From Ascoidea asiatica JCM 7603 (taxonomy: Eukaryota; Fungi; Ascomycota), in NCBI GenBank assembly GCA_001600695.1, contig BCKQ01000014.1, forward strand, positions 255,872 to 319,871: 64,000 bases of DNA, written 5' to 3'. A model generated the notes under the pieces. The model ran no database searches and was not told the origin of the DNA. It worked only from the letters and a program-made list of their open reading frames with translations. Positions 1,172 through 47,280 of this stretch are shown here, in pieces (position 1 is the first letter of the stretch; every line of letters starts with the position of its first letter). Made by a program: the position numbers and the translations under genes.

Positions 1172-1296
1172 GTTGAGATATCATTGAGATATATTGAAAT
1201 ATTATTGAGATATATTGAAATTTTATTGAAACGAATTAGATGATTTGAATGATATGAATGATATGAATGATATGAATGATATGAATGATATAAAAA
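1172..1296 (+). promoter_or_regulatory. Repeat-built promoter of the secreted-peptide gene: ~6 (A)TTGA(G/A)A units at 10-11 bp period, (TGAATGATA)x5, then TATAAAAA
   Basis: Repeats read directly at 1172-1230 and 1246-1290; TATAAAAA at 1289-1296, 114 nt upstream of the ATG at 1403. Confidence 0.55.
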
Positions 1297-1402: not shown

Positions 1403-1582
1403 ATGCGTTTCAATTATTTAATTTTAGGATTATTTGCAGCTTCAACAGTATTTTCAGCACCAACACCAATTTCAAAACCTGAAGCAGATGCAGTTGCAGA
1501 TGCAGAAGCAGTTCCTCAACCAAAACCAACTGAAAATTGTAGTTTTTATGCTAGATTAACAAGACGTTTTTGTGTTGCTTAA
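1403..1582 (+). CDS. Small secreted prepropeptide, 59 aa: signal peptide, X-Ala/X-Pro dipeptide prosegment, Cys-x10-Cys mature peptide
   Basis: Manual translation (below ORF-track cutoff): MRFNYLILGLFAASTVFS-APTPISKPEADAVADAEAVPQPKP-TENCSFYARLTRRFCVA*. AAAATG start context, host-like A/T-ending codons, GC richer than flanks. Confidence 0.8.
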   Translation: MRFNYLILGLFAASTVFSAPTPISKPEADAVADAEAVPQPKPTENCSFYARLTRRFCVA

Positions 1583-2114
1583 TTGAATTTAAAAAATGGA
1601 TTAAAAAAATGGAAATTAAAATGGAAATTAAAATGAAAATGAAAATGAAAATGAAAATTAAAATAAAAATAATAATTCAATAGGAATCTTAATTAATTTA
1701 TTTTAATTTTGATTTAAATTTTTGAAATTTAAAAATGTTTAATTCAAATAACTAGTTTAAATCATTTCAATTTATATTTTCAATTAATTCTTCACTTCAA
1801 TTCTTTTACTTCTCTTACTCTTTCTTAACTTCTTTTTAACTTCTTTCAAATTGCTTTATATATATGAAATAAATATAATGAATAACTATATTAAAAACTC
1901 AACCAAACAATCTGTAAAACAATGACAATGTAATAGAAATTGGGATATTTTCTTAGTTTATTATTTGATACTAATCTACTAAAAATTGTAAATTATAAAT
2001 GCAATTGAGATAGTAATCATCAAATATCATCAATAAATATGAAGTAAAACAACTTTCAATACTCTTCTTGTAATCTTCTTTAATATATTATATTCATTTA
2101 ATTTCAGAATGCTG

Positions 2115-22507: not shown

Positions 22508-22840
22508 ATGGTTGATATTAATTGTATTGCAGATATTTGTTTAATACCAATTGGCACAAATTCACCTTCAGTTTCAACATATATTGCAAAAATTGAATTA
22601 AAAATTAAAAAAAGTGGTTTAAAACATATTTTACATAGTGCAGGTACAACAATTGAAGGTAATTGGGATGATGTATTTAAATTAATTGGTGAATTACATG
22701 AATATTGTCATAAAGATTTAAAAATTTTAAGAATTCAAAGTGATATTAGAGTTGGTACAAGAATTGATAAATTAAATCAATCCGCTGAAGATAAAGTTAA
22801 TATTGTTAATAAAAAAATGAATGATTTATCAAATGATTAA
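22508..22840 (+). CDS. ECM15: UPF0045/thiamine-binding-fold protein
   Basis: CIADICLIPIGT.SPSVS.Y, LHSAGTTIEG.WDDV, RIQSDIRVGTR match recalled Ecm15/YBL001C. Confidence 0.92.
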   Translation: MVDINCIADICLIPIGTNSPSVSTYIAKIELKIKKSGLKHILHSAGTTIEGNWDDVFKLIGELHEYCHKDLKILRIQSDIRVGTRIDKLNQSAEDKVNIVNKKMNDLSND

Positions 22841-29586: not shown

Positions 29587-31431
29587 TTTTTGTTTCTATT
29601 CTTCCAATATCTTATTATCTTATTATCTTACTATCGTATTATTTTATTATCTTATTGATATTTATTGACGTTTATTTCATTCATCTTTCGAATTCTGTTA
29701 ATCTTTCTGAGGTATTCAAAACCAACTTCAAAATTAAATTCAACGGAAAATGAGACAAAAAGACAAAGATTAAAACCAGGGGCTAAAATAAAACGTAATT
29801 CGTGGGTCTGACATAATGCCAGGTGACTACATTGAAAGAATCCTCTCCTCAATCGAGTTCCGTATGTAAACCATTGATTGTACTTCCATCGAAATATCAG
29901 ATTGTTACTAAAAAGATATCTAATTCAAATTACAAACATTTGTTAACTAAAATATAAAATATATAAAAATTGTAAAAAAAAACCGGGAGTTAACTGTCCT
30001 ATTTATATTGGGTAACAATAAGTGCGGGTCATCCATCTCAAAAAAAAATTTGAAAAATTGGTAAGAAAAAGTTCACTTCCCATCATTAACAAATAAACTA
30101 AAATAACGACTTACTTCCAAAATGTTTCGACCATTCTGCGAAAAAACAAAAAAATTTTTAGACCTTTGCGATTCACACTAAACCTCGATGACAATGTTTG
30201 TAATCAACAAGATGGTCTTTTTATTTGTCATATGCGTTTGTAATTTTTAATCGAAAAATAGCCAGTAATAGTAGTACTAACAGAAATTCAAACCGGTTAT
30301 AAATAATCAACTTAAAGCGTCACAGGGCACACAGACAATAAACCCATTATTAACTACTAAATAGATTGCCTATAGAAACGCTCTTAGAAGCAACAGAAAA
30401 ATTTTGTACAACTCTCACAGGCACCTGTGACGAGCACCCAAATCAAACGCAGCTCTTACGACTGCAATAACTAGCAGTAGTAGTCGGCAGCGTGATATAG
30501 CGTGCTTCGGCGCGTCGAAACCAAAAAACCAGAAACCTTCCAGAAACTCAGGAACTTAAGACCAACAGCCAAACTTTAATTAACCCCTGCCACATATTTA
30601 GCGACGTGCACATCTAGTTAAGGTTTTAATCACCTCTCTTGATTACTAATTTTTTCATGAATTATTTTGGTCTAATGGTTTGGTGTTGCCTCTTTTTTGA
30701 CTTGAGTGATTCTTGAGTTTTTGCTGTGATAATGAAGAACAACATGGGAAAAAGTGTTTCAAGTTTTGGCTTTGCATTTAGACTAATCATTATTAATGCA
30801 AAATAAACGAAAATACAGTTCAATTTCAAAAACAAATTGAAGTACTGTACATGGCAGTTATATTATACATTAAGGAAAGTGCTGGTTTCCTTAAATGACA
30901 ATTTTATCAAAATGGCATGTTGACTATCTTGATTCAAAATGTAATTGTTTACTTTTTGGTTTAATTATTTAATATAAAAATAGGGAAATGTTGGAATTTG
31001 GTTTCAGTGGTGGTTTGTTTAAATTGGTTGATTGATGGAACATCATGTGCTTAAATTTACCTTTTTGTTTATATAGTTTAAATGGCAATTTGATTTTGAA
31101 TCGAATTGCAGTTTTGAGGTTTTGTTGATTCAAACGTAATGTTCGGTTAGTCGAGTTTTAGTGTTTTTGATATCAATTGCTTTGTTTTTTTGTTTACCAA
31201 ATTAATATGATGTTTTTTGACAAATCGTTTTCTGTTAAAATTAGTATATATATGTGGAGATGTGTTTATTTATAATAGGTCGATTAATTATATGTTTATT
31301 TCGAATTAGCGTGACTAATTATATTTATTATTAATCATGCTATCTACATTCATTAATATTATTTTTATTATTAAAGATTATTCTATTTAATAGTAGGGAA
31401 AAATTGTTTTTTACACAGAATTTACATTTCA

Positions 31432-32632
31432 GGTTTTATGAAATACGTGGTATAGGTCTTCACTAGAGATCATAGCTTATTCTGTGTCCCCAATTCCCTT
31501 GATGGTAGCGCTGCTAATGATATAATTAATGAAGTTGAAGTTGCTGAATGGAATAATAGTTTTAGCAACATCACAGATGATGAAAAATAATATAACTATT
31601 CCACTTAATGAACTCAATCATTTTGCAAACAAGTAGCACTACATTCAAAATGAAATAATGGTGGTACTTTAAGATGTAATTATTGTTGGCATTATGCTAA
31701 AGTTATTCATCTGTTAACATCTGAGCACAAATAAAATTTATGGGATGGTACGTTTGGCAGAGTTGTGGATATGTTTGGAATCAAAACTTTAATACAGAGA
31801 GGCATTACGTTCCCTGAATTAGTTAATTATATTTCAGATATGTTAAATCATATTCTTACTCTTTGTATTGTTGATAGTGCGGCAGGATTTTTAGACCCTT
31901 TATCTAACCGTGAAATAAATGTGAGAAAGTTGGTTGACAAGTTGGGAAACCGTAGGATCGCATTTGAAATTCTAGCACATTTAGATAAGGATTCCCTATT
32001 TGGAAATGATGTAAATGAGTTTACTATGAAAGTCAATTTAATTAGGATGAAAGTGAGAGGTGTTGATTCTGCCTTTTCAGATGCAACTATTGCTAACTAT
32101 ATTCTAAAAGGTATAGGTGGTGGTATGGTTCTATAACGAAAAATCATTAGAGCTTAAGTTTCTATGATATAGTTGGACGTGTCTAATACATTGATCAAAA
32201 TGAATGAGGATATTGATGCAAACGGCGGAACTAAAGAGGCTTCAAGTTTGAGGATCAGCAATGTTAATAACCATAGTGAACAGGAAACAAAATAGAAAAA
32301 TTCTAAGAAGAAAAAAATTCCCGGAAAAAGTTTCCATTCTAGAGTGGTTGGTGATACAAAGGCTTGAAGTTTTAAGTTAAAACATGAAAATGCCTATGGG
32401 AATATTGACTATAGGGCAAGGTTGGAAGCAAATTTCAGAGAGCTTCCAAGATATGATGGTAATTCTGATGCTTCAAAACATTGTACTAAATTAACTAATA
32501 ATATCATTATAGAGTCAGCTGTTGGTTCATCTATTACATTTAAAAGACCATTATTACAAGATATTAATGATGCTGAGGATTCATAAATTTCGAAGGTCCT
32601 ACTGGTAAAATCTTTACAACAAAAGAAGTTTG
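31432..32632 (+). mobile_element. Decayed Ty1/copia element, 5' part (PBS-like site, gag, protease)
   Basis: CA-GGTTTTATGA at 31430-31441 resembles the Ty5-type PBS; UBN2-type gag segment DVNEFTMKVNLI...FSDATIANYILKGI; degenerate protease IIIESAVGSSI at ~32505; many stops. Confidence 0.7.
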
Positions 32633-33477
32633 CGTTAGAAATAATCGAGATCTATAAATGCTAGGGCATATATTCGTACTAACACCTTAGGTAGTGAAGG
32701 TCTAAAAGACACGTACGTATAGTAGACCTAACAGAGTTTGGTATCATACAATAATGTGTGTAGACTATGAACATAGATACATAATCAGGCATAAATATAC
32801 ATATTGTTGAATAAAGTTGCATTAAGTTGAATGAAGAATACATCAATTCAAATGACCTTGAATGAGTCTGTGTACAAGTACACACAAAGTCGGTTATCAT
32901 GTGATATTCTACTCAGAGGGCATAACTCATGTGTGCTTACGTCAGGTATAGCTTACAAAGTAGAGAAGACCTTGAGATTCGTACGAGCGATAGTGGTAGA
33001 ACCTTTAAGAGCATATTAAAACTAAGCCGCTCGGTACTAGGAGGCAAAAAGAGGAGCTAGAATTTAGCTACAATCCGGATAGATGTTAAATCCGAAAGGC
33101 CAATCGGAGCCAGGCAGGGACGCCATCTGGATGGCTGGATTGGCTAAGCTTAGTTTCATGTGAGATAAGGTATAATTCTCACTGCGTATACCGAATTGTC
33201 TCGGAGTAAACAGGAGACTAGTGGAGATAGTCCCGTAAGGGATCTATTCCGAGTACGGCTTCGGGATTAAAAATTATTCCGAGCAATTAGTGCGATTGTC
33301 TACCCCACTGGAAAGAGGGCTGATTGTTTTCCTATGGTAAAATTGAAATGTGAATTTCAATTAATTTCTAATCAAGTTTTCAACCCTTTTTACAAGGTAA
33401 ACTTGATTCCCACCCTCATTGTTCGACGGAATCCTCGGACTTTTGGGAATTCCAGAGAATTCTCGATAGCTCTGTGA
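32633..33477 (+). mobile_element. LTR copy A (truncated at its right end)
   Basis: Reverse complement of ~35787-36510 with an indel; starts CGTTAGAAAT versus TGTTGGACAT; interrupts the copia protease and runs directly into RT. Confidence 0.85.
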
Positions 33478-34678
33478 GTTGAAGAATACATGTCTATCTA
33501 GAACAATAATGTATTCGATTTGATCGGTTCCAGTTCAGTCAAAGATAAACTAATGAGACGACGTTAAAAATTTACTGTTAAGAATGAACATTCTGGTGAA
33601 CGTTTCAAAACAAGAATTCTTGCCACGGATTTAGTCAAACGGAAATACAAAACTTTGTTGATGCGGATTCTCCAGCAATGGGATATCAGACAGTTACTTT
33701 GGCTGTTTCCAGTGCTGCAATCAATCAACGGAAACTAGTTCAGTTAGACGGTAAGAATGCTTTTCCTAACGGTCCAGTTGACCAAGCTGTCTTTTTCAAC
33801 CTCCTTCTGCTGCTGATACTCCTGTCAACAAGATATGGAAATTAAACAAAGGATTGTAGGGTTTACAAAAATTTCTGCATATTTTGTTCAACAGTGTCAA
33901 CAATGTGATTGTGAATCGAGGTTAAAAACAACCAGTTCTTGAATCTTGCTTGTTTCTAAAATCTGACTCCATTCTTACAATCTATGTTCATGACATTCTT
34001 ATTTCTGGTCAAACTGCTGCAGTTATTGATAAAGCTAGAAACTAACTGGAAACAAAATTTATGGTGAACTTCATGGGATATGCATATGTGTTCTTCGGTA
34101 TTACAATTCCAAAAACCGGAAATGATATCAAAATGAGATCCACTGGTTTTATTTCCAGATTAGCTGAATATTATGAAATTTCCAGAGAAAAAGTTATTTC
34201 ATCACCATTGGTTACTGCATTTGATGCTTATGATCATCCAAGTCAACAACTTAATGAAACTGAGCATTCAAAGTATAGGTCCATTGTTAGTTGCTTCTCA
34301 CTAATTGCAAATACAGTCAGATTGGATATTGCTTGTGCAACTTCATTGCTTTCCAGGTTTCTACCTACTCCTAGAACAATTCATTTGCACGCTGTTTTGA
34401 AAGTTCATCAGTACTTAGCTCAAACCAATGACTTTCCTATTCATTATTCAAAAGCACAATACTGGTACTTTACTACCAGTATTGTATTTTCCGGAGTCAA
34501 CGTTCAATGAAGCGGCTGCAATGTTCGTATCATTGATTACAATTCGGTAATTTAAGAAAAAAAAATAAAACTATTAACAGTTTTATTTTCTTCTACTGTC
34601 ATTGAAATTTGATTCTCTATTTTTAGACTTCAATATCGAACGGCAACGTCTATGTCAGGGGCAGTATGAGCTACATTA
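33478..34678 (+). pseudogene. Ty1/copia reverse transcriptase and start of RNase H, degraded
   Basis: RFKTRILA, QLDGKNAFPNG, WKLNKGL*GL, IYVHDILI (YVDD site), YRSIVS...RLDIACATSLLSR; frameshifts and stops. Confidence 0.88.
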
Positions 34679-35495
34679 TGTTGGAAATTCTGAAATGTTT
34701 GAATAATTACTTTCCGTCCCATGTGAGTGATCGGTTCTGAGGTTTATCTCAAAAACCATCGAGGTGTTGCTGGCGAACTTTTCTTTTATTATTGGTTGTG
34801 CACCTTGTAGTTCGCTGTAATTTGAACAATTTTTTTGGATAATTGTACCTTCCTCAACGGAGAAGCTGCTTAGTTTTTGGCATACCGGTTATAGCTGTAC
34901 TTTGCGTTGCCCAGACACAGCTTTACTGCTAATGAATATCTAATTTTGGATTAGGTATACGAGTGCTTCCACCCAGATAAAACTGTTTGAAAAATTTTGA
35001 AATTGAGGTCTTCACAACCCTGAGATTTCTGAGATACCGTTACAATTATCTCCTTGATCAAGGTGGAAATTCAAGCGGGAATACAGGCACGTGGAGCTTA
35101 CGAAATGCCATTTCGTCCCGCGACTTATTGTTCCGGAAAAGATCTTGGTAATTTTTACAAGGCGATAAAACAATTTCATTTTTCGACCGGAACTTTGTCG
35201 CAGTACCCTGTTAGCCGAGCCTTTATCCGCTGCTATCGGATTGTTAGTCAATTTATTGTTATGTTAGAGTAAAAGTACAATATTCTAAGCTATTCTTAGA
35301 TTTCCTGGAAATGCCTAGTTTAGTCTACGTCTACATTATATTGCTTTCTCGGAACTTCGGTGAAGGTCTCGAATGTACCAGAAAGTTCTCGGTCTCCATT
35401 TTTCATTCTTCGCTTGTAGGTCCGTGTGAGTCTGGAATGCACTCGAATTTCGGTCTTTGTTAACAGAATGTCATTAACTCTTCCGGAATGCAACA
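34679..35495. mobile_element. Possible solo LTR of a second family
   Basis: TGTTGGAAAT starts where copia RNase H homology stops; CAACA at 35491-35495; no second copy in the window and no clean TSD. Confidence 0.3.
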
Positions 35496-35601
35496 CTATT
35501 ATTTTTGTTATCTCAAGTATGGTAAGTTAACTTGAACAACCACATTCTACACAGGTATTGCGAAGATAGGTTTCCCCCTCCTACTTAGTCTGTCATAAAA
35601 C

Positions 35602-36510
35602 TGTTGTAAATTCTCATTCATTTCACAAATTTACAATTTCGAATTATATAATCAACTCTTTTACTTACTTTGTATTAACCAATTAACTCGTGCTAATCGA
35701 TGATCTAAAAAAAAAACTAAATAAATCATATAAAAAATCAGAGGAAATTGATTCCATTTATCTTAATTCAGGAGTCCTACGGGGTCCCGCAGAACTATCC
35801 AGAATTCTCGGGAAATCCCAAAAGTCCGAGGATTCCGTCGTACAATCGGGGTGGAAATCAAGTTTACCTTGTAAAAAGGGTTGAAAACTTGATTAGAAAT
35901 TAAATGAAATTCACATTTCAATTTCACCATAGTAAAACAATCAGCCCACTTTCCAGTGGGGTAGACAATCGCACTAATTGCCGGGAATAATTTTTAATCC
36001 CGAAGCCGTACTCGGAATAGATCCCTTACGGGACTATCTCCACTAGTCTCCTGTTTACTCCGAGACAATTCGGTATACGCAGTGAGAATTATACCTTATC
36101 TCACATGAAACTAAGCTTAGCCAATCCAGCCATCCAGATGGCGTCCCTGCCTGGATCCGATTGGCCTTTCGGTTTTAACATCTATCCGGATTGTCGCTAA
36201 ATCCTAACTCCTGTTTAATTCTCCTCGTACCGAGTGGCTTAGCTTTAATATGCTCTTAAGGGTTGTACGACTATGGCTCGTACAAATCTCAAGGTCTTCT
36301 CTACTTTGTACGCTATACCTGACGTAAGCACCCATGAGTTATGCCCAATTATGGCTCTCTATGCATAATTATACATAGTGTACACACATTATTGTATAAT
36401 ACATAACTCTTTTACGTTTACTATAGATTCGTGTCTTTTAGACCTTCACCACCTATGGTGTTAGTACCAATATATGACCTAGCATATATAGATCTCTATT
36501 ATGTCCAACA
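35602..36510 (-). mobile_element. LTR copy B, complete, 909 bp
   Basis: TGTTG...CAACA termini; homologous to copies A and C; PBS-like GTTTTATGA follows on the minus strand (35601-35593). Confidence 0.88.
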
Positions 36511-37199
36511 ATAAGGAGGGGTCTTACATCCCATATTTTCTATATAATCTTTATATATTTTAACTTCACTTAATTATTTTTTATAAGTTGAATTAGATAA
36601 GTTCTTAGTAATAATTAAATATTCCTTTCGAACGACAATCAAATTTATTAATATATTTGGAATATCAATTGCTTATTAAAGATAAGTATCCCTTTATTCT
36701 TTCATTGTTTTCTATCTGGCAAGGTAAGTCAGAGTACGACTTTAACTCTCTGATTATTATACTTACAAGAGAGTGATCGCGAAAACTGATTAATCCTGTG
36801 GCATCTCATTTCCTTCCGCATTATTTAAGGTACTTGTCGCCATTATAGAACGTAGTTCCTCTCTGTCTGGTTATTAAGCTTACTTAGTTTATCGTAATGC
36901 TTTAACCAAAATTGAGTGACCTGATAATTTGAAGTGCTTTTCTTCTACTCATTGCAAATTCAAAATTAATGCAAATTTAGTATTGTATGGAATGTTCAAA
37001 ACAATAAAAGAATTTACTAATATAATTTGTTTAATATTACTCTGTATTTCAAATAAATTAGTTTACTAATATTTCCGCTTACAGTTTTTATTCAATGTTT
37101 TCTGTTATATTTATGAATTCAAAATCCAATTTAAAATAAACTTAAATATCAAAGAACATAACCAAACAGTAAAAAAAAAACTGAAAAAAAACAATACCA

Positions 37200-40100
37200 A
37201 AATCTTATAGTTTTACAAATTTTATAGCTTCAGTTGATCAATAACATATTATTACATATTTTAACTCAATATTATATAATGATAACTGAAACTATTAACT
37301 CTTTCGCAACACAATTCAATCATAACATCGCTCTAAATGAATTCACGTTCAATAAAATTGATAAAGAAATTACATGAATTGCTCAACCAATCAACGACTT
37401 TAGATCTTTAGATAAAAGATTTAAAAATCAAGATTCCAATGTTGTTCAATACAGTGAGTACTTTGATGAACTAAAATCTACCATTGCTACACAAAAAATC
37501 TTATATAGATATTGTTCAAGATATGCTGACATAATAACATCGTTTTTATCTAAAAAAAAAACTGTTAATGACTGTCCTGTTCAAAATAAAACAGAAGTAC
37601 AAGTTTCTTCTGCCTCGAAAACAATGAACCCCGGTACGTCTGAAAATATTACTGGCCATTTGAATTGTAATACTACTGAAGCTGATAAGGCTAGGTTTTT
37701 CGAACCTCAAGAGAATATCAAAGAACAAATTGTAACTGCCCTATTTACCATCTGCTGTTCCCAAAATTGAAAAGCATTCACACGGTTTTTAGATCCCCAA
37801 AGTAAATAACCAAAACTTATTCAATGACCAGAATGAGGTTAAAAACTGGAGAGATGATCTTAATTAAATTCAATCTTTTGAAAGCAAGGTTGACTCTGAC
37901 GCATCTGAAATCCAAAGGCTGAAAGTGCCTTACTTCTACCTGGTATGGCTATAAACTGAGATACTTCTGCTACTCGTATGGCAGGTACTTCAATCCCTCC
38001 AAAATTAAAAGCAAACATAATAATTAAAGATAGACATATTATAGAAAACTAATTCTAAAATTACAATATATTGAGACGTACATTAAAATCGATAGGTTAA
38101 TATATGATTTCCCGGGTATGGATCTTTATATCTATATTCTGGAAACTACAAATTTAGAATGGATTAACATCGTGAAAACCATTGCAAGAAATAGTTCAAG
38201 AAATTCTTCGTGCCCTGCTGCATATGCCTTCATTCTGGGAGGCATTGACATAGATTAAAATTATAGGGCTTTAGTTCAATAATTCAAACAAATCAAACAT
38301 TCTGAAAATGAAAAACTTGTTAATCATCTTACGAGATTTATAACTTCCTATGAAAGTCTTCCTTTAAATAGTCTTTCTAGTCGTTTCCTCTGATGAACAA
38401 CCATTTCTCAAATTAAAAATAAATTTCCTCATCAAATTCAATGAGAAACAAAATTTCCCCCAACTATTGAATTATTTAATAGAGAACTCAATTGGTTCAC
38501 TGCAGGAGATGTTTTTATAGCCGTTTTTATAGCTGTTTTAAATGAAGCTCTTATTCTCAGTGATATTTATATGTTCAACAATCTTGAATATGTTATTGAT
38601 TCGAATTCCAAAATAAACTTCAATAAAATTCGTTTGACCGGCCAAACGTCTTACTTCGGTAATCTGCCAATACATTTCCGAAATTCTTGTTTCTGGTATC
38701 GAAAACACAAAACAATTTGCAAACAGGGAACCTGCGAATAGAAAATCGAATGGTAATTCCAATTCTAGATACAAAAATCAACATGACAAGAAATCTAGCT
38801 ACACGGTCCCTGAAGAAGCAGTGCAGGATGACCAACTTCAGAAAACAGAGCGTTAGCTGTCCTGGGAATCCTTGTCTGAAGATGAACACTTTAGATCAAT
38901 TAACACCAATAACAAAACGTTTCGTAATAAATACTCGAATTCTACTGTTAATGATAAAAAGATGAAAATTCCTTTTGCCACTGGTGGCGAATCCAACTAT
39001 TTTTTTGATTATTCTTTAAAACGATTTGAAATAAAAATGCTTAAAGCCTAAGTATTCAACAGTTCATGGCTTTGTAGGCGCACTGATGGTCAAGAATGAT
39101 GTCATTTTACGGCTATTCATTGAAAACGTTGGTTTTGTTGACCTTAAATGTGCGGTTTTACCATAAAGTTTAAGAACATCTCTCGATATCACTATTTGAA
39201 GTCGATTTTTTATGCCACCATATGTTTTCTGCAAATGATAATGATAAATTTTGAATTATGGTTTTTGATGATTTTGAAAAGTTTCCTTTCAAACCAGGGA
39301 GTATGCATGAACTACAAAAAGTTTACGTCTACACATGAAAACCGAATCAGAAACAGGAGTTTGATGTTAAGAAATACCCTTAGTTAAATGATCCAACTCG
39401 AAGCTGGTTATTATCAGTTTTCATTCATTTTACAAAATCGAATATTTAAAGTTTAGTTACTTACAAACTAGGTATTCATCAATTAACTCGTGCTAATTGT
39501 TGATCTAAAAAGACAACCAAATAAATTAGATAAAAGAAAACAGGGAATCGATTCCTTTTACATTATTTCTGGATTCCTACGGGGTCGCGGAGCACAATCG
39601 AGAATTGTTAGGTATTCACAAAAGCCCCGGGATTCTGGGGTAGAATCAGCGTAAGAATCAAAGTTACCTTGTAAAAAGGGTTGAAATCTTGATTTGAAAT
39701 CAATTAAGCTTCAAATTTCAATTTTATCATACTAACACCTATCAGCTCACTTTCCAGTGGGGTAGACAACCAATGTAATTGCTGGTACCCTTTAAGCCCA
39801 ATGCACCCACTAGTAATCGATTATTAAAGGACTACCTCGACTATTGTCCTGTTTATTTCGAGACTATTCGGAATAGGCAGTGGGAATTATCCCTTATCTC
39901 ACATGAAACTAGGTTTACCCATTCAAGAATCCAGGATTTTCTCCTCGGTCCGATTGGCCTTCAACATCCATCCGGATAGATGCTAAATGCTAAGTCCACT
40001 TCTACTCTCCTCGTACCGACCGGCTTATCTTCAATATGCTCTTAGAGATTTTGTATCCTTGGCTGGTACCAATGTCAAGATGTTCTTTACTTTGTCCGCT

Positions 40101-42900
40101 ATACCCGATTTAAGCGCGCATGTCCGATTCCATGTGACTGGAATATTACATGCTATACGATCATCTGTTTACCTGTGAATAGACTTATGAAGTCTAATAT
40201 AAATTGACGCATTCCTCGAGCAACTTAATGCTATTTTTTTATTGATATGAATATGTTTGCGTATTAATTCTTCTCTATGCATCACTGTATACAATGTATA
40301 GAGGTGATTTTGTACTACATGAGTTTGTTCCGGTTAATATAAATTCCTGTGTTTTACACCTTCACCTCTTAAGGTTATAAAAACCATATATGCCCTACCA
40401 TATATAGATCTCTACGATTTCCAACAGTTACCCACCTCCCTCGAAACTCTGTTCAAACATACTACCCAAACAACATCTGAATCACCAATGTATATCGGAA
40501 GCTACAACTATACTCCTCTTCTTAACAAATTCGCTGAAGCACTTCTTGAATCAAACTGAGACACTGGAGTATTTTTGAAACCAAAAGTGGTTGACCCTTT
40601 CGTTTAGTTCTTGTTCGAAAAGTTGATAAAGGTTTTTGAGTGTGTGTTGGTTATACGAAATTAACTGCCATTAGTGTTTGGCATTATATTCCTTTACATT
40701 CTACTGATATTGGTCTAAAAAATCTTAATGGTGCTAAATAGTTCACTTGCCTAATTATGATAAATAGCTTTTACTAAATTCCTTAAGATAATGATAGTAA
40801 AGCTAAAACAGCATTTTCATCCAATTCATGTCATTATGAATTTAATCTATTGGCTTTGGGCGTAGTCCATGGTACCTATACCTCCCAATCATCTATGAAA
40901 AAAATGATAGGTGATTAATTATGTTCTGCTTTTTGCTAATCATATAATTATTTATAGCCATAATAAGTTAGAGGAACATTGTTCAAGTTAATGAGGTCAT
41001 TACTCAACCTGAAAAAGAAAAACATTTTAAATGTCAAGAAGTCTAAATTCTTTTGCATGGATGTTAAATTTTCAGGGCATATTCTTTCCTCTGAAGAACT
41101 AAAAACTGATCGGACAAAGATTAACAAGATCTTAGATTGGCCATTACCAAAGTCAATTATTACTTTAAGAGGTTTTACTAATATATGTTGATATTATCGA
41201 AACTTTAAGTGAAATTTTTCTCAACAGATAATCTATCCTACTGTTTCATTTTTTGGCGCCCCTAAACAAGGAACAAAAATTGAACTAAATCTTTCTCTGA
41301 TTCAAGCACTCACAACAATGTACAAAATCATTAACTACTGCTCCTGTCTAAAAAGTATTTTGTCCTCAGAAAGTTGCAATCCTACAAACTGATGCTTCAG
41401 ATATTGCCTTGGGTTTGGTATTACTCCAACCATATATACAATAGAGCACTAAAAAAATTCGAAGGTATCTTCTTCATTTTGAATCAAGAATATTTTCAAA
41501 ATCGGAACAAAAGTATTCTGGTCAACACCAAGAACTTTTGCCAGTTGTTCATTCATTGATTCATTGTCCATATAATGAACTATGCAAAATTAATTTAACA
41601 CCTGATCATCAATCTGTTCAATATATTACAGCTAAATCCGCTCCCTGAAATAGAGTTATAACATTTATTAAACTCATTTAACATTATTTTTTTGATATTC
41701 AATATAAGAATAGAAAACAAATTGTTTTTTCTAAGTTACTCTCCTTAAAAACTGTTTTGGTTGTTAAATATGAATTGAAAACTTAATGGAAATTGATGAA
41801 CTTAGTGAAAGTGCAACTAAAATAAAAACTCACAAAACCATTAAGGATTTCTGTGAAGTTGGTCTTAGTAAAATTAAAGAATATCTTTAAAATAAACAAC
41901 TTTTCAAAAATCTGTAGTCCAGATTTATCTTTTCTTACTTTATGTTTTAGGAGAATGAACTTCAGATTACACTTGAAGCTCATTCACGTACTGTTTTCAG
42001 TGACGAAATGTTACAGAAGTTTCTTGAAAGTTCCTCCTTCCGATTCTCAAGGTTCCATTGGAAATTTAGCAAACGGAGTGAATGAGAAATTCTTTCACCC
42101 TGCTATTTTATTATCTCGTCAAATTATTACAGATTGTCTTCATTGCCAACCTGTCAAAAAGCCATCTGTTTTCACTAACAAATTCACTGCAATTCCTGTT
42201 ACAAACAGCTTTTACTATATGGGATGGATTAGTTTTTTGCTCTTCAAAATAAATCTTCTGTTAGTAAATATTGTGTTACTGCCATTGATTATGGTACACT
42301 TTATGCTTCTGTGGTTCCACTACCGGATTGTGGTTAATTAAAAGTTTTAAATTTAGTACAACCTAGAGTCCCAAAGCATTGTCAAATGTACCAAACTAGC
42401 ATGGGTAGTACTTCTCGTTTTGTTTCAAACAATATTATTGAACTTGTTCCTCAAGCCCCCAAACAACCCAACACCACAACATATATCCCAGAAATTAATT
42501 GTAAATGTGTAACGTTTGATCCAATCTTCAGCCAAATTCTATTGAAGTTGAATAATTTCCTACAATGGGAACTTCTAAACATGGCTTTATTGATTTAGTA
42601 CAGGTTCCAAAAACAGAAATTTGGATTTGTAGTGTGCTTGCCTGCTTTTGGTTTTAGCGCAGGTTTAAACAGTAGTACGCTAAGATATTCAACATGACCT
42701 AAAATACGGCTCTCCAAAAGATCCCAAAGTAAAACCGAAAAATGGAATGCCAATATACGAAAAGGAAGCTGTCTCAGACATCAACTTTGACAACTCAAAT
42801 ACCGACCCGAAACTTTGCAAAGACCGATAGTGCATTAAAAGATTTTTTGTTGGCGATTCTGTTTTCAGCTATCAGTGGAATAGTATGGTGCTAATGTATG
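37200..42900 (+). mobile_element. Decayed Ty3/gypsy element (gag-PR-RT-RH-IN); boundaries approximate
   Basis: PR remnant FATGGESNY at ~38975; RT LVRKVDKGF*VCVGYTKL...KAKTAF...HYEF at 40610-40850; KILDWPLPKS; RNase H LQTDASDIALGLVLLQ at ~41380; PDHQSV; integrase H...CLHCQ at ~42095-42150. The RT-RH-IN order is gypsy type. Confidence 0.88.
39412..40426 (-). mobile_element. LTR copy C, solo LTR inserted in the gypsy pol gene
   Basis: Colinear with copy B, ends TTCCAACA; flanked by GTTAT (39407-39411) and GTTAC (40427-40431); removing it restores gypsy frame IQLEAGY|PPPSK. Confidence 0.85.
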
Positions 42901-45900
42901 TGTATGCTTACTTACCGCTGAAGTGGTTTCATAAAAATGTTGATACGCGTGCAACATCTCGCTGTTAAATCACAATTAACGTAAATAGTAGTAAGTTCAT
43001 CCTTAGTCTGTAGCCTCACTGTTCATTATCAAAGTCTTTTAAAATTGGGAACTAGTTATAAATAGTAATGCGCAATGGTTGAGTGGAGCACGCAGAGCCC
43101 TTGACCTGCAAAGGTGGCCCGATGGCGATGTGAAGCACTGCCCGTTTTCACAGTAGGTGTTGGAAAACATGTGCGGGTATTTTACTGTTTCAGCAGAAAC
43201 CGTCGGAAACGTCCAACTATCGCGATTGTGCTCAAAATGTTTTGTTGGTCTTACCTTGCTTTAACCACATCAGTGGCTGTCGCATGTTTTTATTTTTCCG
43301 TAAAGTTTGCTGTGCCGCTCATATATACATAGCATTCTTGGTGCTCTGAATATTACAGGATAATTCCCTGCACCAGTTTCGAGTTTTTTTCAAGTATAAA
43401 AATATATTTTTCACAAATGGATTTCGAACTTTTGCTGCATATGGTTACGCCCCTCTGGTTTCCAGTAATGAGAATCGGTTCTTTCAACCTCAATTGTGTT
43501 TATCCAAATGGTACATATTTTAAGTTTTAATTAATAATTGATTTCATTTGATTTCGATTTTTTTCCAGGAATACTAAATTGATTTGTTAGAACTCAAATT
43601 AATTTGGAAATTTAAACATGTTTCCCTTGTTGTAAAAATGCAGATATAACTCTCAGACGTTTTGATAGCCCATTCAGGTTGTACAAACAAAACAGTCTGC
43701 TCCTGGCAGTGAGTACCAAAAAGCACAGTTTGACAAACAGTTCTGTAAGTACAAAATGGAGAATAGAAGTTTTTTAGTCCTTACTCAATCTACGTAACCT
43801 CAATTTAGATCGAAAGGGTCATTCGACAAGTGTAATGTTTTTTTTATCGGAGGTCCTAAAGATCTGTCAGTTAGGCCATCTAAATGAAATTGATATCTTA
43901 AAGAAAAACAACAACAATTGAAATTCTTTTCTACTAAAGCTGTAAATAAGAAACAAATCGTTCGAGATATGTGTATACCAAAATACAGTGGAACACATAA
44001 CGCTTAATAATTAATTAAAATTTATAGGTCGACATGGGGCTCGAGCATTATGCCCCTAGCGCTCCGACTGACATCTAAGGTAAAGCTGTTTTGCACGTCA
44101 TTATGATTGCTGTTACTGAACAGCACAATTAAAAAAAGCTGTTGAAATTTTGACATGTTTCTATTTTTCAATACAAATAAAGCAACCAAAAAACCCTCGA
44201 TTATATTAGTGATTTCAGGGAACGTAATAGTAAGCATAATTTTTGTTTTTATTAGCTAATACAGTCTGCATATAAATGATAAAGATAATTGTCTTAATGT
44301 CAAGTATTTGCCATGGGCCTTTGGATTTTAAAAAAAATGATTGTCGTTTGGAATTCTTAATCCAGCTGTATCCAACAACTAATATTGTACCACTAATCTA
44401 AAGAGTGAAAATTGAGCTTCCCACTACCACACAACCCCAATGGGTGCTAGACAAACTGTATTTTCTGATTATCGGTTCATTACAAAAGTGGGCTTCGCTG
44501 ATCACTCACTAAGTTTTAACCTTTTTAGAATGTTTTAGTATTTTTCAATAGCATTTACAAAAACACAACATCTGGTTCCTAGGAAATCAGAAATTCATAT
44601 TACTTTTAATGGTCCTCGAATAGTTATATTTTTGCTAGCACTCTCCACATTTTCAATACAATAAGGAGAATAATTTGCGGATTTTGTAAAACTGTTCTAA
44701 CTACTACAACTGTCTCAGATCTTATCATTTGTTAAACATTATTTAGTCACAGTTTCCAATCATCTGTCCGATTACCGCTTGCTCTGACAGAAACTAATTA
44801 GTTGCTAACGGATTACAAATTCGAAGCAATGAATCGGCATTTTAATAGCTAATCTAGTTGCCGCTCACAAAGTATAAAATATAAGTGCATTTTGTCTTAA
44901 TGATGCCACGGGTTTTAAAAACATGAAAAGGTTTTATGTTTGGAGATTTTTAATTTAATTAGTTGTCTAGAACATCAACCAAAAATGTGGGTGATTTTGT
45001 GACTCTTTAAAACAGATGTGACATGTTATCCAGCTGACATTGTTAGGTAAACTGGCTTAACGACAGAGTGGCTTTTTTAGACAAATTTAATTTACCGAGT
45101 ATCAGGTTTTTGGTAATGGTTACGAATGCACTTCGGCTCACCACAGTTATGTTAATGCTAACATAATTAAGATCGCTGATAAAAATAACAAGCAAGTTAC
45201 CCTGTAAAAATAATGGATTTTGTCTTGCATAGAACATGCAAAATCAATTGTGATTACTACCCTTTAAATCATAAAATTGTGAAGCAACATTTTTTCAGCT
45301 ATTATGTTTTTTTATAGATTATTACTTCTCGCTTTATTAGACATTTTCGAATTTGTATTTGACTAAAACGTGTGTGATCTAAAAGACCATTTAATTAAAT
45401 CTAACTATTCACAACTATAATTAAATTTATCTCTTATAAATATCAATTAAATTATTCTTATATGTCATATAGATAATATCCTGGGTTTCTGTGTAATCTT
45501 TCGAATATATGTTTGTTAGTAAATTTTGGTTTTTTTTTCATTTTTTTTATAGAAAATTTATTACCATGATAAAATCAAAATTTACAAAAGTAAAATGGAC
45601 AATTCTACATTTTTGTCCATTACCCAAAAACCTTGGCTGTTTCATGTAAGTCTCCCACAACACACGTTCCGCATGTGTGGTGACATATTTGGTCTTATCA
45701 GAAATCTAATAGTATTGTACAAAAATGCGGAATCTGTTTTATATGTGATTATTACAAAAGTGCTGAGTGTAAGTAAACATTATTGAAAACTTTGTAATTG
45801 TTTACTAGAAATGCGGGAGTTTGTTTATATTTAGCAAGCACATTAGAATTAATACAAAGTTGTTAAACAAAGTAACATGTTTCTGTGAACTTTTACAATT

Positions 45901-46707
45901 TTTCAATCATGCGGAGTACAGTGCGGGATTTCATAGGAACTTTGAAATTATTACAAAGTTTTTAAACATTATCATTTTGCACTTAGAACTTTGCCATGGT
46001 AGCAAATAGCCATTAGTATTACCCGTGATGCTATGTTAATCTCAATCCGCAAATTGGTATTGCGGACCAATGAGCCAGACTTGTACTAGCTAATCTAAGT
46101 TCTACCCACGGAGCAGCAGGTTTTTGGTAATTATTACCAAAAAACTTAGGTTTATATTTTAGTACCTAAATCATTGTCCCTTTATGAAAACCGTGAATAA
46201 TCAACATTATTGTGTTAGTAAATAAAGTATGCGTAAGAAAGAGCTCCCTTTTGCATATTAGGATTCTCTTAGATTTCAAATTGCTTGTTCTATTGACGAC
46301 AAAATCCATTTTTGTTTGCAGGGTAACTTCCTTGTTCTTTTCATCAGCGATGTTATCCACTTTATGAGGTGGTTACATAATCAACAAAATTTCTCGACTA
46401 TGGAGGAATTGGAAATCGGGAGAAAAAATAAAACATGATCGCATTGCCGAGAATTATCAGAATGAAATCATTAATATCGAGCGGTCAATAAAATTAGGTT
46501 GCGTGTGACTGGTAAGTGTGGCGCAGTACAGATATTTTCTTTTAGTGTCCAGATGAAATACTAATATAAATATTCTTTCCTCACTCATCTCATTTATCTG
46601 AACTTAACTATTAATTTTTTACATATTTGAGCACCATTTTATCTATCATAGTATATCAATAATTTAAATTAAAACTACTGACGAAAGATTATTATTTACA
46701 TTAACAC

Positions 46708-47280
46708 ATGGCTTCACAAGATAATCCCCCCATTGTTCCTTCTGGTTGGAAGGCAGTCTGGGATAATCAATATAAAACTTTTTTTTATGTCAATTTATCA
46801 ACAAATCAATCTCAATGGGAAGCACCAAAATTAGATACAAAATCAGATATTAGACCACCAGTGGAAGCTCCACCTTCCTATAGTCAAGCTCAACAAGCAC
46901 CTCAAGAAAAAAGTAAATCTTCGTTGAAAAGTAGATTGTTTGGTAGATCAAATCATCAACAACAATATCCTCAGCAATATCAACAACAACCACAAAATCA
47001 ACAATATGGTCAACAGTATCCTCAACAACAATACCAACAAACCGCACAACAACAACAATATCCTCAACAATATCAACAACAGCCACAGTATTATCAACAA
47101 CCTCAAAGGCAAAAGAAAAGTGGATTTGGTATGGGTGGTGCTGCTTTAGGTCTTGGTACTGGTTTATTGGGCGGTGCTTTATTAGCAAATGCATTTGATG
47201 ATGATTTTGATGGTCCACCAGGAGGTGGTGATTATGGTGGTGATGATTTTGGTGGCGATGACTTTGGTGGCGACTGGTAA
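46708..47280 (+). CDS. WWM1: WW-domain protein Wwm1
   Basis: PPIVPSGWKAVWD..Y.TFFYVNLSTNQSQWEAP, PPSY, Q/Y-rich middle, GLGTGLLGGALLANAF. Confidence 0.92.
   Translation: MASQDNPPIVPSGWKAVWDNQYKTFFYVNLSTNQSQWEAPKLDTKSDIRPPVEAPPSYSQAQQAPQEKSKSSLKSRLFGRSNHQQQYPQQYQQQPQNQQYGQQYPQQQYQQTAQQQQYPQQYQQQPQYYQQPQRQKKSGFGMGGAALGLGTGLLGGALLANAFDDDFDGPPGGGDYGGDDFGGDDFGGDW

Follow-up and report, generated by a model that had tools for sequence, protein, structure and literature searches.

The locus and its small open reading frame

The stretch of DNA analysed here, referred to as the window, comprises 64,000 nucleotides of Ascoidea asiatica JCM 7603. Its first part holds an open reading frame (ORF) of 59 codons that is located 2.4 kb beyond a KAR4-like gene and 1.25 kb ahead of CDC6. 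LYS2 and the KAR4-like gene are the upstream neighbours; CDC6 is followed downstream by HSF1, a gene for a PRP22-type helicase and HRQ1. As judged from its sequence, the ORF is most likely an unannotated small gene for a secreted peptide precursor of 59 residues, and its parts are listed together with the surrounding elements in Table 1. Translation reproduced exactly what a preliminary description of this DNA had reported, namely the frame itself, a run of 12 dipeptides (11 of them X-Ala or X-Pro), a Cys-x10-Cys spacing and three arginines. No further in-frame start was present upstream, and no canonical yeast 5' splice site was visible ahead of the stop on reading the sequence. Three public DNA runs, which belong to two studies, gave contigs in which the ORF has the same sequence, with no difference and no polymorphism; it is hence not an assembly error. 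No RNA run was found to contain the locus. As the number of CTG codons in the frame is 0, the CUG-Ser ambiguity of the clade leaves the translation unaffected.

Table 1. Features of the ORF and its flanks (window coordinates)
Feature	Position	Strand	Basis and remarks
Tandem repeats, units 11 and 21 bp, TTGAGATATA...	1173..1231	+	Tandem Repeats Finder; possible promoter element
9-bp tandem repeat ATGATATGA	1240..1291	+	Tandem Repeats Finder; 5.8 copies, 97% matches, reaching into TATA box
Consensus TATA box TATAAAAA	1289..1296	+	Script, pattern TATAWAWR; 114 nt 5' of ATG; alone weak in AT-rich DNA
ORF, 59 codons, ATG to TAA	1403-1582	+	Translation; Met1-Ala59
Predicted signal peptide, residues 1-18	1403..1456	+	Kyte-Doolittle, (-3,-1) rule, AlphaFold2; Arg2, hydrophobic core LILGLFAASTVFS, cleavage between VFS and AP
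Pro-region, residues 19-42	1457..1528	+	Translation; 12 dipeptides, net charge -2
Internal GCAGAT hexanucleotide tandem repeat	1481..1511	+	Tandem Repeats Finder; encodes EA-DA-VA-DA-EA
Putative mature 17-mer TENCSFYARLTRRFCVA, residues 43-59	1529..1579	+	Translation
TAA stop	1580..1582	+	Sequence
AAAATG hexamer repeat	1606..1670	+	Tandem Repeats Finder; 10.8 copies, non-coding 3' flank

Read in pairs, residues 19-42 are AP TP IS KP EA DA VA DA EA VP QP KP, so that Ala or Pro takes second place in 11 of the 12 dipeptides and Ile23-Ser24 is the exception. The 17-mer carries Cys46 and Cys57 with 10 residues between them as well as three Arg, and has a net charge of +2. Neither a KR nor an RR-x site precedes it and it is present once, at the C-terminus; both the missing KR site and the single peptide copy had been pointed out before and are seen in the sequence. 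The putative mature peptide also contains an N-x-S sequon, Asn45-Cys46-Ser47 (1535-1543), the Cys of which is one of the two cysteines of the proposed disulfide. A single-sequence AlphaFold2 model had an overall pLDDT of 58, which is low confidence, and consisted of a helix over residues 3-18, a disordered pro-region (pLDDT about 50) and a low-confidence helix over residues 44-55.

Three ACGCGT (MCB) motifs lie downstream of the ORF at 2115-2248, within 134 bp and 590-720 bp 5' of the CDC6 start, and the whole window holds 4 such motifs with 0.5 expected. Since the ORF ends ahead of this cell-cycle promoter, which belongs to CDC6, it is a separate transcription unit, and it is presumably transcribed. 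The repeat arrays at 1173-1291 contain many GATA cores; they may have a regulatory role or represent no more than a minisatellite.

Predicted signal peptide and dipeptide pro-region

The first 18 residues have the build of a classical secretion signal according to heuristic rules. A basic n-region (Arg2) is followed by a 13-residue hydrophobic core with a maximum mean Kyte-Doolittle hydropathy of 2.05, and the residues at -3 and -1, ahead of Ala19, are Val and Ser. Cleavage after Ser18, which the preliminary description had proposed, is therefore allowed by the (-3,-1) rule and the signal peptide is plausible on these heuristic grounds. The cut after Ser18 is also the only (-3,-1)-allowed site that places a trimmable dipeptide first in the run.

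From this cut the dipeptide register is kept until just before Thr43-Glu44. The 12 even slots of the pro-region hold 11 of its 12 Ala/Pro residues (hypergeometric P 5e-5), so that the X-Ala/X-Pro region is in register with the predicted signal peptidase cut. The five X-Ala units in the centre are not independent events because they are encoded by the GCAGAT/GAAGCAGATGCA tandem repeat. This repeated part of the pro-region (1481-1511) grew by replication slippage and should be taken as roughly a single event. In the seven dipeptides that flank the repeat, Ala or Pro is in phase in 6 of 7, for which a hand calculation gave P of about 0.015.

Enzymes of the DPP-IV/Ste13 type prefer Pro or Ala at P1, and Thr-Glu is not removable by dipeptidyl aminopeptidase. 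In promelittin-type precursors the X-Pro/X-Ala run continues unbroken up to the product; here 11 of 12 dipeptides conform and Ile23-Ser24 interrupts the run, and this pair would likely slow or stop Ste13-type trimming after two steps. The genome encodes enzymes of the type needed for such trimming. A profile search returned two genes with both a DPPIV_N and a Peptidase_S9 domain (DPPIV_N scores of 337.7 and 305.3 bits), which correspond to the Ste13/Dap2 pair expected in yeasts, and the best solved structural relatives of the first of them were DPP-4. Furthermore, the peptide unit of the alpha-factor gene of this genome (see below) is preceded by a DA-EA-DA spacer, from which it follows that this organism makes use of Ste13-type trimming of Asp-Ala and Glu-Ala. 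The enzymatic basis on which the preliminary description relied is accordingly present. There is precedent for both parts of the arrangement: the prepro leaders of Yarrowia lipolytica XPR2 and LIP2 have an X-Ala/X-Pro stretch directly behind the signal peptide that is removed by a dipeptidyl aminopeptidase (PMC9252082), and promelittin is activated stepwise by DPP-IV (Kreil, 1980, as cited in PMC5778000).

The hexamer repeat in the middle of the pro-region is also what would be expected if the ORF encodes a real secreted small protein in which the Ala/Pro stretch is nothing but a flexible spacer expanded by slippage and the product is a chain of 37-41 residues. A Ste13-type enzyme should indeed stall at Ile-Ser after two steps, and the helix modelled over residues 44-55 would keep Cys46 and Cys57 at a distance that an intrachain bond could not bridge. 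If these residues are helical, the two cysteines would therefore be free for interchain bonds, and may bond a partner such as a wall protein, as in Aga2-Aga1, or a second copy of the same chain. However, a mere spacer does not account for the non-repeat flanks, which hold Ala and Pro in phase (6/7), nor for a run that stops right at the non-trimmable Thr-Glu pair. Moreover, neither AGA2 nor any other Pfam family was matched and no partner was identified. We consider this explanation, the leading alternative, possible, if rather unlikely.

Evidence for a coding gene

Base composition by codon position provided the strongest indication that the frame is a gene. The window has a G+C content of about 16-28% except for one richer block, and the overall value in its first 2 kb is about 0.19. 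G+C at the first, second and third codon positions of the ORF is 0.49, 0.53 and 0.03, respectively, and the corresponding values for the long genes of the window are 0.28, 0.25 and 0.07. Of the 59 third positions only 2 are G or C, whereas codon positions one and two together have 60 such bases in 118 (Fisher p 1e-11). Leaving out the internal repeat did not abolish this difference (Fisher p 1e-7), and it was present in the mature part alone, with 0/17 at third positions versus 15/34 at first and second positions (Fisher p 8e-4). No such phase effect was seen in either flank when read in the phase of the ORF. Under strong AT pressure, GC-rich first and second positions next to an AT-saturated third position are the product of selection on amino acids. 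The maintenance of 50% G+C at the first two positions despite the AT pressure of this genome hence argues for selection on the encoded peptide.

A codon model led to the same conclusion. The log-likelihood ratio was +19.9 in the frame of the ORF and negative in the other five frames. When the 74 small ORFs that do not overlap the window's long genes were scored, the ORF ranked third, behind two that tied for the top, and only three of the 74 gave clearly positive scores. One of the two ahead of it is a 110-residue ORF at 22508-22837 (+), which served as positive control; it matches Pfam Thiamine_BP (PF01910) with an E value of 7e-26 and showed a strong coding signature. Together with the TATA box and a start context of AAAATG, the codon-phase composition sustains the earlier claim that this is a genuine small gene.

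These data also bear on the suggestion that there is no gene at all and that the frame is open by chance in a compositionally odd, repeat-derived intergenic patch. Tandem repeats do lie on the flanks and in part of the ORF, and the sequence is an orphan left uncalled by annotation in the collections searched. Nevertheless, the codon-phase signal holds outside the repeat and within the mature part. A frame newly born from local non-coding DNA is expected to have Asn, Lys and Ile in abundance, whereas the observed product is rich in Ala, Pro, Arg and Cys, and a chance frame would require that a signal peptide, an in-register dipeptide run, a TATA box and a start context coincide. We therefore rate a chance frame as very unlikely.

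Search for relatives

Searches for related sequences were negative throughout. Within the A. asiatica genome (20.3 Mb, 71 contigs) there was no paralogue of the full protein or of residues 19-59, and tblastn against the KAR4 and CDC6 regions of A. rubescens returned no match (E <= 1), nor was a similar small ORF found there; the check for paralogues and relatives recommended in the preliminary description thus yielded neither a paralogue in this genome nor a counterpart beside these two A. rubescens genes. ORFs 186 kb upstream, among them one of 213 residues, were likewise dissimilar to the peptide. The exact protein does not occur among the roughly 15 billion predicted proteins searched, consistent with the view that it is unannotated. 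A word-based search of 5.8 billion proteins produced no candidate, Pfam contained no family at E <= 10, and in the ESM Atlas the best score of 0.80 was within noise and residues 19-59 found nothing. Two candidates were rejected. The single match in a phmmer search of 1.84 billion representatives (E 4e-4) was a 794-residue repeat protein aligned with residues 8-40 only, and was attributed to chance similarity of low complexity. In a metagenome scan two loci were returned that belong to a bacterial regulator of 54% GC and share the word GLFAASTVFS by chance.

A hunt for other precursors of this build in the same genome used a degenerate DNA pattern, which gave 499 matches, mostly microsatellites. 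At the 30 loci fetched from among the first 100 matches listed, no small signal-peptide ORF with such a dipeptide run was present. On sequence evidence the ORF thus appears to be an orphan restricted to its lineage. Small ORFs are often left uncalled, as the absence of this very ORF from 15 billion proteins illustrates, and lack of relatives is for that reason weak evidence.

The ORF is almost certainly not a mating pheromone gene of a known type

The preliminary description had likened the leader to that of alpha-factor and had offered a pheromone as one possible product. A. asiatica has a multi-unit alpha-factor gene of canonical Kex2/Ste13 type elsewhere. On contig C10 (~92.67-92.74 kb; L041:1455-1529, - strand) we found the 3' end of such a gene, which reads ...QPVV-KR-DAEADA-HWITLEPNQPVV-stop. 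The predicted pheromone HWITLEPNQPVV has 12 residues and resembles WAGVAPNQPIF, the alpha-pheromone of Saccharomycopsis fibuligera (PMC5106798). A second match coding for PNQPIV is located about 1.5 kb upstream of this 3' end (C10:94281-94298). A Pfam MF_alpha match on contig C8 (15.5 bits, E 1.08) was rejected as it concerned a featureless frame next to RPS2.

The 59-residue protein itself matched neither MF_alpha_N (PF05436) nor MF_alpha (PF04648) in hmmscan even at E <= 10. The superficial likeness to the alpha-factor leader (MRF..., LFAAS, cleavage before AP) therefore reduces to the generic likeness among signal peptides, and this part of the preliminary description was not upheld. The 17-mer lacks the Trp...Pro-x-Gln-Pro pattern that the peptide from C10 has in common with the S. 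fibuligera pheromone, and no TGAAACA pheromone-response element was found in the 1.4 kb 5' of the ORF. In spite of the Ste13-type dipeptides and the superficially similar leader, a Kex2-bypassing precursor of an alpha-type mating pheromone is thus extremely unlikely, given a canonical gene with KR and DAEADA on C10, a promoter devoid of the response element, no MF_alpha_N match, and a single-copy ORF that has no KR and whose 17-mer has two Cys in place of the pheromone pattern.

Two further classes of fungal peptides were compared. The chain ends with Cys-Val-Ala-stop, the Cys being third from the end, and has no CaaX motif and a signal-like N-terminus; hence it is not an a-factor. Nor is it a Kex2-processed repeat protein (KEP), since no dibasic site lies upstream of the one core. 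Tandem Repeats Finder reported the hexamer spacer repeat as the only tandem repeat within the ORF and no repeated core.

Proposed maturation and function

We put the probability at about one half that the ORF is a single-exon gene of an Ascoideales yeast, restricted to its lineage, and that its product is a prepropeptide which is secreted, is shortened by a Ste13-type enzyme and has its role outside the cell. Signal peptidase would cut after Ser18 in the ER. In the late Golgi a membrane-bound dipeptidyl aminopeptidase of the Ste13 type would then take X-Pro and X-Ala pairs off the new N-terminus, Ala-Pro and Thr-Pro first, followed by Ile-Ser, which would be slow or blocking, and by nine more dipeptides, until trimming would halt at Thr-Glu. 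The basic 17-mer with its two cysteines would thereby be released, with a predicted monoisotopic mass of 2033.96 Da with one disulfide; should Ile-Ser block, a 37-residue intermediate beginning at Ile23 would result instead, for which the corresponding mass is 4047.99 Da. For the untrimmed chain from Ala19 it is 4414.18 Da. The charge of the pro-part (-2) may offset that of the product (+2) until trimming is complete. The product would act extracellularly and not as an alpha mating pheromone, candidate roles being competition or antimicrobial action or another kind of signal. Of the earlier interpretation, then, the small gene, the plausible signal peptide, the dipeptide run, the processing enzymes and the single copy without KR site stood, and the pheromone did not.

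With a net charge of +2 the 17-mer falls outside what is expected of a cationic amphipathic antimicrobial peptide. Its hydrophobic moment was 0.38 when calculated for a helix (100 degrees) and 0.42 for a strand (180 degrees), values reached by 22% and 19% of shuffled sequences, respectively. A charge of +2 and a moment at the level of shuffles lend little intrinsic support to an antimicrobial or a signalling role, both of which we retain as candidates. A more specific version holds that the product is a killer-type or host-defence peptide made by the promelittin route, for which Kex2 would not be needed, which would stay inactive until all 12 dipeptides are gone and in which Ile-Ser would act as a timer and the 17 residues would form a disulfide loop. 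We know of no chromosomally encoded class of yeast peptides of that kind, and we regard this version as speculative and improbable.

Comparison with known precursors

The closest architectural parallels are promelittin and other hymenopteran venom or antimicrobial precursors activated by DPP-IV. As in these, about 11-12 X-Pro/X-Ala dipeptides come immediately behind the signal peptide, a short basic peptide is preceded by an acidic pro-part, there is no dibasic site, each precursor contains one peptide, and trimming ends (in the ORF, is predicted to end) at the first pair other than X-Pro or X-Ala. In contrast to these, the ORF comes from a yeast and has no sequence homology to them, Ile-Ser breaks the rule, and the predicted product has a weak positive charge (+2), no significant amphipathicity, two Cys and no C-terminal Gly for amidation. 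The leaders of XPR2 and LIP2 share with it the X-Ala/X-Pro run immediately behind a yeast signal peptide. Their run is short, however, and is followed by a further pro-region that ends with KR and by a large enzyme, whereas the run in the ORF has 12 units and no KR and the cargo is a 17-mer. MF-alpha and the KEPs (PMC9769878) are likewise secretory precursors of short peptides and contain EA/DA spacer dipeptides for Ste13. Unlike these, the ORF has no Kex2 KR site, no repeated core and no glycosylated MF_alpha_N pro-region. Peptides of the bactenecin/thanatin type are host-defence peptides with a cationic loop or hairpin closed by a single disulfide. The 17-mer may be analogous in that it is short and Arg-rich with two Cys able to close a loop, yet its loop would have 10 residues, its charge is only +2, it has no significant alpha or beta amphipathicity and it shows no homology to them.

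If the ORF is expressed, it would represent a stand-alone yeast peptide matured by signal peptidase and dipeptidyl aminopeptidase only. In yeasts this route is, to our knowledge, known only as an accessory step (alpha-factor spacers, XPR2 and LIP2 leaders), and the same route is known in insect venom and antimicrobial precursors. The architecture itself is thus known from DPP-IV-trimmed precursors and the novelty would be a stand-alone, Kex2-free peptide gene in a yeast. If this holds true, a Kex2-independent class would join the KEPs among the secreted peptides of fungi. Expression of the ORF would also mean that codon-phase composition is a simple finder of short genes missed by annotation in extremely AT-rich genomes, and a leader composed of a signal and a self-removing spacer could help to secrete small peptides without a Kex2 site. 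All of these implications follow from one orphan locus.

Genomic neighbourhood and synteny

The closest named proteins for the flanking genes came from Ascoidea rubescens, with 40% identity for Cdc6 and 71% for Kar4. In A. rubescens a WW-domain gene lies 355 bp beyond KAR4 (L008:10001-11888) and a Voldacs-domain gene 355 bp ahead of CDC6. Neither spacer is roomy enough for the ORF, and the KAR4 and CDC6 neighbourhoods there are not collinear with the window. The WW-domain gene of the present genome was found at 46708-47277 (+), about 45 kb from KAR4, and as a consequence of this displacement the ORF adjoins a synteny breakpoint with respect to A. rubescens. Rfam (E <= 0.1) and tRNA scans of the 2.4-kb spacer between KAR4 and the ORF returned nothing. 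Within this spacer, a patch from -455 to -98 relative to the window (L003:5417-5774) has a higher G+C content and overlapping short frames on both strands.

The richer block of the window extends over about 17 kb (30000-46700), has a G+C content of 0.31-0.36 next to neighbours of about 0.2 and is nearly devoid of long ORFs. One frame of 66 residues within it (40991-41188) looks like a fragment of a retrotransposon reverse transcriptase. Decay of a cluster of retroelements is a possible origin of the block, which may alternatively be a region resembling a centromere.
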